Below, piece by piece: positions 22,393 to 58,651 of a stretch of 64,000 nt of DNA (the first letter of the stretch is position 1; every line of letters starts with the position of its first letter). Under the pieces are notes generated by a model. That model saw only the letters and a program-made list of their open reading frames with translations, searched no databases and was not told the DNA's origin. The translations under genes and the position numbers were made by a program. Source of the DNA: Macrostomum lignano (Eukaryota); contig NIVC01000482.1 in NCBI GenBank assembly GCA_002269645.1, positions 1 through 64,000 of the forward strand, in the 5' to 3' direction.

Positions 22393-25300
22393 TCAGCGCA
22401 GCTGGTTTGCGGCCTCGGCAGCCGCAGTCCTGATGGCGGTCCTCAGCCGGTCGCACAGTTGGACAATTCTGCCTGCCTGAGCCGCCAGCGGAGCCGCCTG
22501 CCGTGACAGCGCCGCATCCGGCCGGAAGTGGAGCGACAAGTCGATGTAGGGGTCGGACTCGGCGGCGCTGTTCGGGTAGAAGTCGCCCTCGGCTACGATG
22601 GCGTCGACGGCAGCGGCGGGATCGGGGTCGGCCAGATGGAACCAGTGGGCGCGACGCCGGTGCCGGATGCCGACGATCCGGTCTCGCATTGACGGCGGCA
22701 CCCGCTCGCTGACGCGGATGCGACCGCCGGGCGCCGCCCGGATGTAGGCGAAACCTTCGGTAGCGGCGTCTTTGAAGAGGCTCCGATGCAGCCCGGAGCC
22801 GGCGGCCACCGCGGCAGCGGTTGTCACCGTGATCCTCGTGTCGACGCCTCCACCGAGTCGATCGTCGTCGAAGTCGGTGTCCAAGACGGTGGCGTGCACC
22901 CAGTTGAGCTGGCGCTCTTCGACCCGCTCCAACTGCAGGCTGGAGTCGTGGTTGAGCACAGCCTCGTATGAGGTCGACACCTTGACTGACAACTGCGATT
23001 GGATGAGAGTGGGATTCTAGTGAGGATTTTCCATTGTCGAGTGGGGATTTTCCATAGAATGAATTGGGGATTTTCCACTAAATGAATCGGAGATTTCCTA
23101 CAAAATGAATTGGGGATTTTCCACAAAATGAATTGGGGATTTTCCACTAAATGACTTTGGGATTTTCCACTAAATGACTTTGGGATTTTGCACTAAATGA
23201 ATTGGGGATTTTCCACTAAATGACTTTGGGATTTTCCACTAAATGACTTTGGGATTTTGCACTAAATGAATTGGGGATTTTCCACTAAATGACTTGGGGA
23301 TTTTCCACTAAATGACTTTGGGATTTTGCACTAAATGAATTGGGGATTTTCCACTAAATGACTTTGGGATTTTGCACTAAATGAATTGGGGATTTTCCAC
23401 TAAATGACTTTGGGATTTTGCACTAAATGAATTGGGGATTTTCCACTAAATGACTTGGGGATTTTCCACTAAATGACTTTGGGATTTTGCACTAAATGAA
23501 TTGGGGATTTTCCACTAAATGAGTTGGGGATTTCCATTGCAGGAATCGGGGCCTTCCAATTCAAAATCACCTTCACGCCATGCCCCTGCCTGTCCGGCAG
23601 AGCCGCCGGAGCTTCCGTTCTCACGAATCCCAAACTTGACAAGGCCGCGGCGAAGATGGCGACGTCCAGAACCTCAGCCGGCTGCTGGCCGCTGCACCGA
23701 TGTCGACGCAGCCGTTCAGCCATGGAAGTCGCCGACGCCGCCTCCGACTGCAGTGGGTACAGGCCGCAGCGGAAGCCGCAGCCCAAACGCCGGTTTCGCC
23801 GAATCGATTTCGCTTCCTGTGCGTTCGGCGCCGCTCTGCGACCGCCGACGCCCCCACCGCCGCCGTTGCCGCGGCCCCCGACTTGCAGCGGCATCATTGG
23901 GATTCCGTCCACTTGATCGCGTTGGCCAGGCGGCGGCGGCGGCGGCTCCCGCGGCTCGAACTCCTGGCGCTCTGCCTGGCGCCGGTACTTTTGGCCCTTG
24001 GCTACGAAGGCGGCGGTCTCGGCCAGGGACAGAGTGCTCTGGGTGGCCGGCAGCGACTCGTCCGCGTTCAGCAGGTAGAACTGGCCGACGCGAACGGTCA
24101 CCTCCAGGGAGGCGGGCAGCTCCGACTGGCCGTGGGGCAGGCCCGACAGCTGAGGGAATTTGATGGGATCTGAGAATGAGGGGATCTGAAGATTATGGGA
24201 TCTGAAGACGATGGGATCTGCAGCTGATGAGATCTGAAGCTGATGGGATCTGCAACTGATGGGATCTGAAGCTGATGGGATCTGAAGCTGATGAGATCTG
24301 AAGCTGATGGGATCTGCAACTGATGGGATCTGAAGCTGATGGGATATGAAGCTGATGGGATCTGAAGCTGATGGGATTTGAAGCTGATGGGATTTGAAGC
24401 TGATGGGATCTGAAGCTGATGGGATTTGAAGCTGATGGGATTTGAAGCTGATGGGATCTGAAGCTGATGGGATTTGAAGCTGATGGGATCTGAAGCTGAT
24501 GGGATCTGAAGCTGATGGGATCTGAAGCTGATGGGATTTGAAGCTGATGGGATTTGAAGCTGATGGGATCTGCAACTGATGGGATCTGAAGCTGATGGGA
24601 TTTGAAGCTGATGGGATATGAAGCTGAAGGGATCTGAAGCTAAGGGGATCTGAAGATAATGGGGATATGAAGCCTATGGGATCTAAAAAACCAGGTTTGG
24701 GGATCAAAGCTCCGGAGATTCGCACCTGCCTGCTCATCACGAGGAACAGCCGCCTGGCAGCGGCCTCCAGCCAGACGTCGCGGTCCGGGCAGTCGCTGCC
24801 CAGACAGCGCAGCAGGCTGGCCGTCTTCAGTCGGTGTTCGCCCACCACGCCGGACACGCAGTTGACCAGCCGGAAGCGGCAGTGCTCGGACAGGCAGCGG
24901 TCGCCAAGCAGCAGGCTGGCTCCGTCCATAAAGTACCTGCAGGCCCGGCGCCGGTGGCAGGTGCGCAGCAGCCAGCCCGCCGCCCCGGCCATCAGGCGAA
25001 CCTCCCGACGAAGCCGGGCGACCGCGCCGGCGTCGCCCTCGGCGGTGAGGCGCAGCAGCGGCGGCCTGTCGGGCAGCGGCAGCAGCTGCACCCTGGCACA
25101 GCCGGTGGCCGAGGCCAGCCGAGCTTCGTGAAAGCCGGCGGCGCGGCCGAGCTCCTGGCTGAGGCGGTGCGGCAGCGTCTTGGCGAAGCGGGCGACGCCG
25201 GCGCAAATTCCGGCGGAGGCAGCGGCGGTTACCATGGCAACGTCGCGCGAGTAGTGCAGCCGCAAGAGGGCGGCGCGGGCGCATTTGGCGGCGTACCGGA

Positions 25301-58651: not shown

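Follow-up and report, generated by a model that had tools for sequence, protein, structure and literature searches.

A six-module, helicase-bearing cellular RNA-dependent RNA polymerase of Macrostomum lignano with a proposed role in silencing, and a transposon-broken copy of its gene

Does a single gene of Macrostomum lignano join, in one polypeptide, activities that act together as separate subunits in the RNA silencing of other organisms? The question is raised by contig NIVC01000482.1 (assembly GCA_002269645.1), of which we analysed a stretch of 64,000 nucleotides, called the window throughout. An earlier note on this stretch had described a gene fusing a superfamily 2 (SF2) helicase, a cellular RNA-dependent RNA polymerase (RdRP) plus a nucleotidyltransferase (NTase), and had interpreted the product as an amplification machine for RNA interference (RNAi). 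We consider it rather probable that the gene in the window is one of two or more nearly identical copies coding for a helicase-bearing cellular RdRP of 2,821 amino acids (aa) and six modules, working in silencing by the mechanism set out below. From the N- to the C-terminus, the modules are a zinc beta-tent domain, a helicase of the Dicer/RIG-I-like receptor (RLR) type, the RdRP, an NTase of the Cid1/GLD-2/CutA type, a KH-like domain and a triphosphate-tunnel fold. The three-part anatomy given earlier had overlooked the zinc, KH-like and triphosphate-tunnel-like domains. The protein falls in the helicase-bearing RdRP family represented by the Hydra and Phytophthora RDRs, while Dictyostelium RrpA, the published type, is likened to it here by description only.

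A single gene and its relatives

Stop-to-stop translation of the minus strand resolves coding islands between repeat-filled gaps, and the raw open reading frame (ORF) pieces were scanned with Pfam. DEAD/ResIII matches fall at 57.8-56.3 kb and Helicase_C matches at 54.1 kb and 41.1 kb, followed by the RdRP family PF05183 on eight consecutive pieces from 34.4 to 28.1 kb and by MTPAP-like_central, the Pol-beta NTase palm, on the ORF at 27723-26782. When a crude concatenation of the window pieces is searched against 5.8 billion proteins, it retrieves BOX15_Mlig000965g3 (P0001, 2,821 aa), which it matches over 100% of the length with 97% identity. GenBank thus already contains this M. lignano protein, with the gene annotated as giving one product ("hypothetical protein BOX15_Mlig000965g3"). 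Mapped back onto the minus strand of the window, P0001 runs from an ATG at 58651 to the stop codon at 22395-22393, so that the limits proposed earlier for the gene (58651-22393) are exact at both ends. The locus that encodes P0001 is a second one, NIVC01000172.1:214760-251536 of assembly Mlig_3_7 (L001, the sister copy), which is collinear with the window.

The same architecture is found well beyond M. lignano. A relative on a metagenome scaffold (L002) is a single uninterrupted ORF of 2,596 codons, the translation of which was verified, and a relative in Aphanomyces astaci (L003, QUTD01011764) is a single intronless ORF of 2,449 codons; because both encode the architecture in single ORFs, the fusion is independent of splicing models. 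Across eukaryotes, we observe more than 50 collinear proteins of 2,300-2,800 aa. The search in other metazoans that the earlier note had called for yields relatives of the same length in sponges, cnidarians, an acoel and Artemia: three proteins in the sponge Oopsacas minuta, the jellyfish Rhopilema and Sanderia, the hydrozoans Hydra vulgaris (three loci) and Hydractinia, the acoel Symsagittifera, and Artemia. Outside animals, relatives occur in the chrysophyte Spumella, the dinoflagellate Prorocentrum, an oomycete and Diplonema. The helicase lies N-terminal to the RdRP in one chain in the RNA-based gene model of the sister copy, in the single-ORF relatives and in the Hydra vulgaris relatives. 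An exhaustive representative search with a profile of the NTase and C-terminal module returns 135 clusters (50% identity) at E<=1e-30, and in nearly all of the ~45 proteins of at least 2,000 aa among the matches listed, this pair stands at the C-terminal end. Given a protein already in GenBank, helicase-RdRP fusions already published and same-length relatives across eukaryotes, the architecture is neither new in itself nor a trait peculiar to an animal lineage, and the family is an ancient one.

By computation, the locus is a single gene unit with the domain identities described in the next section. The contrary explanation is that the long protein is an artefact of annotation or splicing, and that helicase, RdRP and NTase are phase-compatible neighbouring genes on one strand. 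Such an error is conceivable in M. lignano, where polycistronic precursors are resolved by trans-splicing (PMC5730564), and two long introns, one of 3.4 kb and one of an apparent 13 kb, fall within the helicase part or directly behind it. Against this, the Mlig_3_7 gene models rest on RNA-seq reads assembled with genome guidance (StringTie/TACO with a de novo transcriptome), and the TBONE pipeline, which cuts gene boundaries at trans-splice and poly(A) sites (PMC5730564), nevertheless left the sister copy as one gene. The uninterrupted ORFs of L002 and L003 show the same collinear architecture, as do the more than 50 proteins from sponges to Diplonema, and the linkers between domains are conserved across relatives. 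Finally, the match to Arabidopsis RDR2 extends to about residue 1855, AWY motif included, inside exon 27643-26821, and the NTase palm lies in that same exon; the RdRP-NTase junction therefore needs no splicing, as had been argued from the ORFs. We regard an artefact as extremely improbable, and the earlier claim of helicase, cellular RdRP and NTase in one protein is borne out by the RNA-seq-based sister model, the single-ORF relatives and the collinear proteins.

Six modules along the chain

For the RdRP, PF05183 matches the full-length protein with 406.6 bits (cut-off 23.8) over profile positions 1-581 of 582, and the best-matching solved structures in the PDB include Arabidopsis RDR2 (7.9e-52) and QDE-1 (1e-15). 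Conservation of motifs was scored over 20 relatives, 19 of which extend to the NTase region. The catalytic DLDGD (aa 1568-1572) is invariant in 20/20 relatives, and the intact motif reported earlier is thereby confirmed. The sequence thus identifies a cellular RdRP, for which RNA-templated RNA synthesis is the predicted activity.

The helicase carries motifs I (GxGKT), II (DECH), III (TAS), V (TxVxEEGxD) and VI (QxxGRxR), all invariant or nearly so. Its best PDB match is Arabidopsis DCL1 (3e-46), and a reconstructed ancestral Dicer helicase aligns at 2.6e-38 over query positions 56-522, continuously through the Hel2i insertion. Matches to LGP2 (6e-35), RIG-I and MDA5 lie in the range of 1e-35 to 1e-25, whereas the DEAD-box protein DDX3X reaches just 1e-10. 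These matches point to an SF2 helicase of the Dicer/RLR type, in agreement with the earlier assignment, which the Pfam DEAD/ResIII and Helicase_C matches and the family-invariant DECH and QSRGRAR motifs also uphold.

In the NTase, the residues of the pattern YGS..SDVDL..D2057 (G1972, S1973, D1985, D1987 and D2057) are conserved in 19/19 relatives reaching the region, even in those for which Pfam makes no NTase call, and the W-A-[RK] helix that follows in the central domain is retained. A nine-sequence family profile searched against the PDB matches CutA first (6.5e-9), then Tailor, trypanosome TUT4, GLD-2, Cid1, MTPAP, URT1 and TUT7, with E-values against solved structures from 6.5e-9 to 1e-5 and alignments that run into the central domain (profile position 265). 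The module is therefore best classified from its sequence as a terminal nucleotidyltransferase of the Cid1/GLD-2/CutA type. With the Cid1/GLD-2/CutA/Tailor noncanonical poly(A) polymerases (ncPAPs) and terminal uridylyltransferases, it has in common the hG[GS], the DxD, the third Asp and the W-A-[RK] helix; it differs from them in being embedded between an RdRP and a KH-like domain, and in that the PAP-associated domain PF03828 is not called by Pfam in the full-length scan. The Pol-beta assignment made earlier agrees with the MTPAP-like_central match of the exon ORF, the CutA/Cid1-type PDB matches and the conserved GS..DxD..D, and of the Pfam families then expected, ResIII/DEAD, Helicase_C and PF05183 are all found; the NTase, by contrast, appears as MTPAP-like_central, borderline at full length, rather than with a PF03828 call. 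For this family (PF22600, cut-off 27), the isolated exon scores 30.1, and the Rhopilema and Artemia proteins score 41.5 and 43.4, respectively.

The N-terminal module comprises residues 1-122. All 13 of the sequences compared keep four cysteines (C3, C8, C61 and C64), which form two knuckles in the order CxxC, about 52 residues, CxxC. Below threshold, Pfam matches Yippee-Mis18 in 8/13 family members and RIG-I_C-RD (PF11648) in 6/13 (best E 3.4e-5); the M. lignano member has no PF11648 match in this 13-member scan, and a full-length scan of the jellyfish protein gives both families. An AlphaFold (AF2) model of the domain has a predicted local distance difference test (pLDDT) score of 94. The top Foldseek matches are the C-terminal domain (CTD) of C. 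elegans DRH-3 with 5'-triphosphate (5'-ppp) double-stranded RNA (dsRNA) (6m6s) and the RIG-I RD, with probability 0.99 and template modelling (TM) scores of 0.48-0.58, followed by cereblon and MsrB, which are of the same beta-tent fold. With moderate confidence, we take the module for an RLR-CTD-like zinc domain that precedes the helicase and has a putative function in RNA-end binding.

At the other end of the chain, the AlphaFold model (pLDDT 74.8, predicted TM score 0.77) contains two further modules. Residues ~2274-2352 are modelled as a beta-alpha-alpha-beta-beta-alpha KH type I fold, and Foldseek matches model residues ~13-90 to the KH domains of FMRP, FUBP1, PCBP2 and hnRNP K (probability ~1.0, target TM 0.64-0.76, E 0.1-0.3); the Pfam KH family gives no match. 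Residues ~2359-2821 (~460) match the RESC1-RESC2 structure (8cdp) at E 3.4e-9 and TM 0.58-0.62, with further tunnel-fold matches to the S. pombe RNA triphosphatase Pct1 (3.5e-3) and E. coli YgiF. In a library of viral structures, giant-virus mRNA 5'-phosphatases and capping enzymes (LEF-4 among them) make up 13 of the 14 best matches, and the remaining one is unnamed. The strands of this domain carry the motifs RYFM[DE]G, ERxLxW, HDxRxR and FC[ED]L, and its conserved residues include four acidic positions ([DE]2363, E2648, D2673 and [DE]2773) and three arginines (R2359, R2649 and R2675); which residues face the tunnel was deduced from strand periodicity alone. The tunnel module is also present in the Diplonema protein.

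Several observations weigh against these assignments. Full-length P0001 scores 26.0 for PF22600, just under the cut-off. The Foldseek E-values of the N-terminal domain are weak (0.02-0.06), and both the N- and the C-terminal models, on which the assignments of these modules rest, were built on alignments of 13 sequences. In the KH-like domain, the GxxG loop is degenerate, with the first Gly only (G-[KSR]-A-x). The C-terminal 560 residues have no sequence-level match in Pfam or the PDB, and fold comparison alone worked. Lastly, the alignment of the tunnel-domain family has no recognisable ExExK (motif A) with the motif C glutamates, and the domain may be either a binder or an enzyme. Since the tunnel lacks the ExExK metal motif, we consider it more likely, as far as the model goes, that the domain binds 5'-ppp, as RESC2 does, than that it is a hydrolytic triphosphatase.

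The trypanosome proteins RESC1 and RESC2 (GAP1/2) have a catalytically dead Cet1-type triphosphate-tunnel fold, and RESC2 holds the 5'-ppp of the guide RNA in its tunnel (PMC10201420). The last ~460 residues of the window protein share this fold with them and with Cet1/Pct1 of the TTM superfamily, and the set of metal-binding glutamates is incomplete in RESC1/2 (PMC10201420), as in the window tunnel domain. RESC1/2 form a free heterodimer, whereas the window tunnel is part of a giant RdRP without detectable sequence similarity to them, and 5'-ppp binding is here a prediction. More speculatively, RESC1/2, which as guide RNA binders are confined to kinetoplastids, could have their long-sought relative, or their source, in this module.

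Possible role in silencing

The three central activities of the window protein are found together in well-known RNAi machines. The RDRC of S. pombe, the complex of its RdRP, consists of Rdp1, the helicase Hrr1 and the ncPAP Cid12, and Tetrahymena Rdr1 works with the NTases Rdn1/2; in both, RdRP, Cid1-family NTase and SF2 helicase activities jointly make dsRNA for Dicer. These RDRCs are built of separate subunits, whereas the window protein is one chain, and Hrr1 is not of the Dicer/RLR type. To our knowledge, neither RDRC has a 5'-ppp tunnel module. In C. elegans, EGO-1 and RRF-1 act with DRH-3 and with RDE-3 (MUT-2), a Cid1-family NTase, and the RdRP products carry 5'-ppp. Here too, the set is one of separate proteins. 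The CTD-like domain of the window protein precedes the helicase rather than following it as in DRH-3, and the candidate for 5'-ppp handling is a TTM fold, in contrast to the C. elegans RNA polyphosphatase PIR-1, which is of the cysteine phosphatase type. DRH-3 itself is a helicase of the RLR type whose zinc CTD binds duplex ends bearing 5'-ppp (PMC3973318), and this CTD is the top structural match of the window N-terminal domain.

On the pattern of these systems, the zinc domain and helicase would engage an RNA end or duplex and feed the template, as DRH-3 and Hrr1 do, and the RdRP would make a complementary strand beginning with a 5'-triphosphate. The NTase would add untemplated 3' nucleotides to template or product, as Cid12, RDE-3 and Rdn1/2 do, while the KH-like and tunnel modules would retain the product by its 5'-ppp end or, with lower probability, trim that end. 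Overall, the protein would deliver dsRNA or secondary small RNAs to silencing. The architecture has strong comparative support, and a fused RDRC-like machine is a reasonable interpretation of it. A role in silencing through the production of small RNA or dsRNA is the reading that we modestly favour by analogy; it counts against going further that RNAi amplification, and an antiviral or anti-transposon role, are likewise drawn by analogy with RDRC and DRH-3/EGO-1/RDE-3. Only as a tentative idea do we put forward that the family is a self-contained secondary-RNA factory of six modules, which sponges, cnidarians, acoels, a flatworm and a crustacean would have kept since early eukaryotes and which reads an RNA end, copies the RNA, tails a 3' end and grips the 5'-ppp of its own product in a RESC2-like tunnel beside the KH-like domain.

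A different function would be that of an RLR-like sensor or effector, or of an RNA quality-control enzyme, which marks or destroys foreign 5'-ppp RNA or primes its decay and makes no guide RNAs. The N-terminal zinc domain and helicase do resemble a permuted RIG-I-like receptor, the tunnel domain resembles a 5'-ppp reader, and, according to passages of the animal RdRP survey of Pinzon et al. (PMC6396948), amphioxus has RdRPs and no detectable secondary siRNAs. Passages of that same survey, however, state that all cellular PF05183 RdRPs of known function act in small-RNA pathways (PMC6396948), and parts of two further papers describe the helicase-bearing RdRPs of Dictyostelium as needed for the accumulation and spreading of siRNAs (PMC3661229, PMC3950715). 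The complexes that bring together the same three activities as separate subunits, moreover, are RNAi machines. We therefore think a sensor or quality-control function unlikely and retain the silencing role as the preferred reading.

Parts of this anatomy have been described before. Dictyostelium RrpA, RrpB and RrpC were reportedly presented as helicase-bearing RdRPs by Martens in 2002. Like the window protein, RrpA/B/C and the RDRs of Phytophthora, Hydra and Nematostella have an N-terminal Dicer-type DEAD/Helicase_C region fused to PF05183, with GxGKT and DE[CAV]H motifs; the Hydra vulgaris proteins are collinear with the window protein and of the same length, NTase included. Bollmann et al. 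(2016) described DEAD-helicase, Helicase_C and RdRP domains in proteins of Phytophthora, Dictyostelium, Hydra and Nematostella, which they group as a single clade inside RDR-gamma, with no mention of the NTase (PMC4791657). Published descriptions of helicase-RdRP proteins end at helicase and RdRP, leaving the NTase, zinc and KH/tunnel modules undescribed there; the published domain annotation is thus incomplete for the Hydra type, and probably for Phytophthora and Dictyostelium as well. For M. lignano, Fontenla et al. (2017) listed four RdRPs without domain architecture (PMC5594548), and a 2026 planarian preprint noted eukaryotic RdRPs in this species again. The words helicase and nucleotidyl are absent from the text of the survey by Pinzon et al. 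(PMC6396948).

In a full-text search for fusions of cellular RdRP and NTase, the one relevant item was a figure legend in a 2023 preprint, which places a PAP NTase domain on two amoebozoan RdRPs (10.1101/2023.10.19.562841), and our literature search returned no paper joining cellular RdRPs with a triphosphate tunnel/CYTH or RLR-CTD-like domain; a 2014 review of RNAi domain architectures lies outside the coverage of both searches. The zinc, KH-like and tunnel modules appear to be undescribed, and new as far as checked are the six-module anatomy, the RESC1/2-like tunnel domain and the insertional disruption of the window copy that we describe below. What animal RdRPs outside nematodes do is presented as an open question in parts of the Pinzon et al. 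survey (PMC6396948), and this family offers a concrete handle on it, with RDRC-type activities on one chain in an organism that is transgenic-capable and RNAi-competent. If the models are true, the protein itself would set end handling, with the 5'-ppp held in the tunnel and the 3' end tailed, and this is testable with domain mutants.

Gene copies, transposon and surrounding DNA

The intact sister copy has 19 exons, separated by 17 GT-AG introns and one GC-AG intron, and the window gene model has 18 canonical introns of the same composition (Table 1), including a canonical GT-AG pair at the helicase-RdRP junction 40801/37355 that the earlier note had singled out. The coding sequences differ by 33 synonymous and 23 non-synonymous changes (99.2% protein identity; dS, synonymous divergence, 0.015; dN, non-synonymous divergence, 0.0037; dN/dS 0.24), and all 23 amino-acid differences lie outside the catalytic motifs. 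From these counts and the dS of 0.015, the two loci appear to be alleles or recent duplicates. Such a near-identical pair fits the 180 Mb of duplicated blocks at >=95% identity in Mlig_3_7 (PMC5730564).

The copies also differ in the helicase. Residues 561-683 lie in one exon in L001, whereas in the window the same exon is broken after codon 594, with L001 13926-13934 aligning to either side. A direct repeat of 9 bp, GGTGCTGGA, flanks an insert of 12,964 bp, which starts and ends with inverted repeats GTGTCACAAACACGTAGCAGAATAGG... In their first 600 bp, these terminal inverted repeats (TIRs) share 99.8% identity. Their arms, ~4.6 kb long at roughly 96-98% identity, reach ~45700 and ~47419, and one of them holds an extra 1.4-kb G/A-rich repeat (~51224-52637). 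With TIRs, a 9-bp target-site duplication (TSD) and an empty site in the homologous locus L001, the insert is a class II (TIR) DNA transposon, and the combination of a 9-bp TSD and long TIRs would fit a Mutator-like element. A Pfam scan of its internal ORFs is empty and no transposase was detected; the transposon is probably non-autonomous. The near-identity of the TIRs over 600 bp suggests that the insertion is recent. A non-canonical or U12 intron spanning the 13-kb gap was also considered and is ruled out by the continuous sister exon, the 9-bp duplication and the long TIRs.

The gene in the window is therefore not uninterrupted, since a transposon sits in helicase motif V. The "19 phase-compatible exons" of the earlier note are true of the intact L001; in the window, the motif V exon is cut by the insert, and the "intron" across it is cryptic. 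When the insert and one copy of GGTGCTGGA are excised, an intact ORF of 2,821 codons results. Read-through from the upstream half-exon, on the other hand, meets a stop after seven codons in the insert, and the sole in-frame GT..AG over the gap, 54034/41060 (presumably the junction used in the earlier note), yields SVLDISLDIG, turning the invariant EEG into DIS; in the 20 relatives, E596 and G597 are invariant and E595 is nearly so. The cryptic donor (tca|GTGTCA) is poor, and the acceptor is purine-rich, with a pyrimidine fraction of 0.35 compared with 0.48-0.83 in the 18 real introns. Because read-through stops at seven codons and the one cryptic splice that keeps the frame abolishes motif V, the window copy is probably unable to make the full active protein, and it is most likely an insertional null or severe hypomorph.

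Is the window copy dead, or dying, as an insertional null allele or as a paralogue in decay, so that it contributes nothing and the NIVC01000172 copy is the functional one? To us the matter is evenly balanced. The position of the transposon within the codons of an invariant motif, the fate of read-through and of the one weak in-frame splice, and the near-identical TIRs, suggestive of recent insertion, all speak for it. At the same time, all other exons and splice sites are intact, the amino-acid differences spare the catalytic motifs, and the dN/dS of 0.24 shows that, for most of the period after their divergence, the copies were under purifying selection. A truncated product with the zinc domain and half of the helicase could also be useful. 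It further weighs against a simple loss that the insertion may be polymorphic; it may also be fixed or an assembly-specific haplotype. Gene targeting in M. lignano must in any case reckon with at least two near-identical copies, one of them transposon-broken, and with BOX15_Mlig023635g1.

BOX15_Mlig023635g1 (P0101) is a distant M. lignano paralogue outside the window, 41% identical over the NTase region. Its model of 1,486 aa has RdRP, RdRP_head and NTase; helicase and C-terminal modules are missing from this possibly incomplete model.

Within the transposon, the arms hold a reverse-transcriptase (RT)-like remnant with an RT-like 'YADD' fragment, at ~50251-50966 on the minus strand and as a mirror copy at ~42700-43400 on the plus strand; it has no Pfam match. 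Its duplication in both inverted arms suggests that these long arms were partly built from an older retroelement fragment. The arms also contain, in inverted orientation, a 30-bp minisatellite, GATAGCGGAGCTGTTGCAGGAGCTGCGGCA, at 44313-45417 and 47643-49358 (37 and 57 copies, 96% matches), which is open in several frames on both strands.

Table 1. Positions of the coding exons, with their module content, and of the inserted transposon in the window
Feature	Positions	Strand	Content
Whole coding span, helicase-RdRP-NTase gene	22393..58651	-	2,821 aa with transposon removed
Exon 1	58281..58651	-	aa 1-123; zinc beta-tent domain, CxxC..CxxC; four invariant Cys, AF2, Foldseek
Exon 2	57548..57908	-	aa 124-244; helicase Hel1 start; motif I GSGKT 57673-57659
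Exon 3	56351..57013	-	aa 245-465; Hel1, DECH 56839-56828, motif III TAS, start of Hel2i-like insertion
Exon 4	55201..55488	-	aa 466-561; Hel2 start
Split exon, 5' half	54039..54139	-	aa 562-594; ends within motif V (..STSVL); last 9 bp (54047-54039) are a copy of GGTGCTGGA
Inserted DNA transposon, 12,964 bp	41075..54038		TIRs start at 41079 and 54033; missing from L001
Second copy of the 9-bp TSD GGTGCTGGA	41066..41074	-	
Split exon, 3' half	40801..41065	-	aa 595-683; remainder of motif V (EEGLD), motif VI QSRGRAR 40992-40972
Exon 6	36521..37355	-	aa 684-961; conserved helicase-RdRP linker, without an assigned family
Exon 7	35546..35942	-	aa 962-1093; linker and pre-RdRP region
Exon 8	34013..34376	-	aa 1094-1215; start of RdRP domain PF05183
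Exon 9	33147..33330	-	aa 1216-1276; RdRP
Exon 10	32440..32605	-	aa 1277-1331; RdRP
Exon 11	31204..31492	-	aa 1332-1428; RdRP
Exon 12	30544..30753	-	aa 1429-1498; RdRP
Exon 13	29922..30059	-	aa 1499-1544; RdRP
Exon 14	29201..29590	-	aa 1545-1674; RdRP catalytic loop DLDGD 29521-29507
Exon 15	28149..28567	-	aa 1675-1813; end of Pfam RdRP; followed by the sole GC-AG intron
Exon 16	26821..27643	-	aa 1814-2088; RdRP tail (AWY 27546-27538) and NTase palm: GS 27171-27166, DxD 27132-27124, third Asp 26916-26914
Exon 17	24726..25748	-	aa 2089-2429; central domain of the NTase with W-A-R helix, KH-like domain (25193-24957, aa ~2274-2352), start of tunnel-like domain (RYFM[DE]G)
Exon 18	23571..24149	-	aa 2430-2622; tunnel-like domain, disordered Pro/Gly-rich loop
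Exon 19	22393..22992	-	aa 2623-2821 and stop; C-terminal half of tunnel-like domain (ERxLxW, HDxRxR, FC[ED]L strands), terminal helix

Nearly every intron (23042-37812 and 54344-56286) consists almost entirely of a tandem array, and the repeat unit differs from intron to intron. Among the units are a 23-mer (23042-23533), a 16-mer (24161-24684), TTAG (25769-26785), a 24-mer (28594-29198), GAGT (29601-29885), a 35-mer (30116-30531) and TGTC (34616-35540). In L001 these arrays recur with other numbers of copies, and when translated they produce long ORFs, all spurious, on both strands. The intron after the split exon contains a long, low-complexity purine-rich (GA/AG) tract at 38130-39560 (GC skew -0.65, AT skew -0.56) with Glu/Arg/Lys-rich pseudo-ORFs on the minus strand, and a similar tract is seen at 31.6-32.2 kb.

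Upstream of the gene, the region 58700-64000 (compared with L001 1-5000) is AT-rich (GC ~0.30), and the copies differ by kilobase-scale indels: ~2.5 kb are present in the window only (62905-60361), and ~4.3 kb in L001 only, in intron 2 (L001 6405-10682). Rfam and tRNA scans of the window are empty. Downstream, the minus strand carries a 276-codon ORF (13918-14745) with a hydrophobic N-terminus and a Cys-rich segment ..CAGLCNSKRDCQAFSL.., which has no Pfam match. About 3.6 kb downstream of the RdRP gene and on the same strand, an intronless ORF of 465 codons (17399-18793) encodes a rhodopsin-family G-protein-coupled receptor (GPCR; 7tm_1, E 4.8e-37). Several exons of a sodium:neurotransmitter symporter gene (SLC6/SNF, PF00209) follow at ~8140-12874 on the minus strand, the best of them at 9983-10390 (E 4e-47) and the N-terminal one at 12572-12874; minisatellites occur in its introns too, among them an array of the (TGTC) type close to 12.2 kb and, at 8.9-9.5 kb, a repeat whose translation is a Thr/Pro/Ser/Lys-rich peptide. 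Contamination or a viral origin of the RdRP is ruled out by the 18 spliceosomal introns with their M. lignano-type minisatellites, together with the adjoining metazoan GPCR and SLC6 genes. Immediately upstream of the L001 gene, the opposite strand carries a gene for an amino-acid permease.

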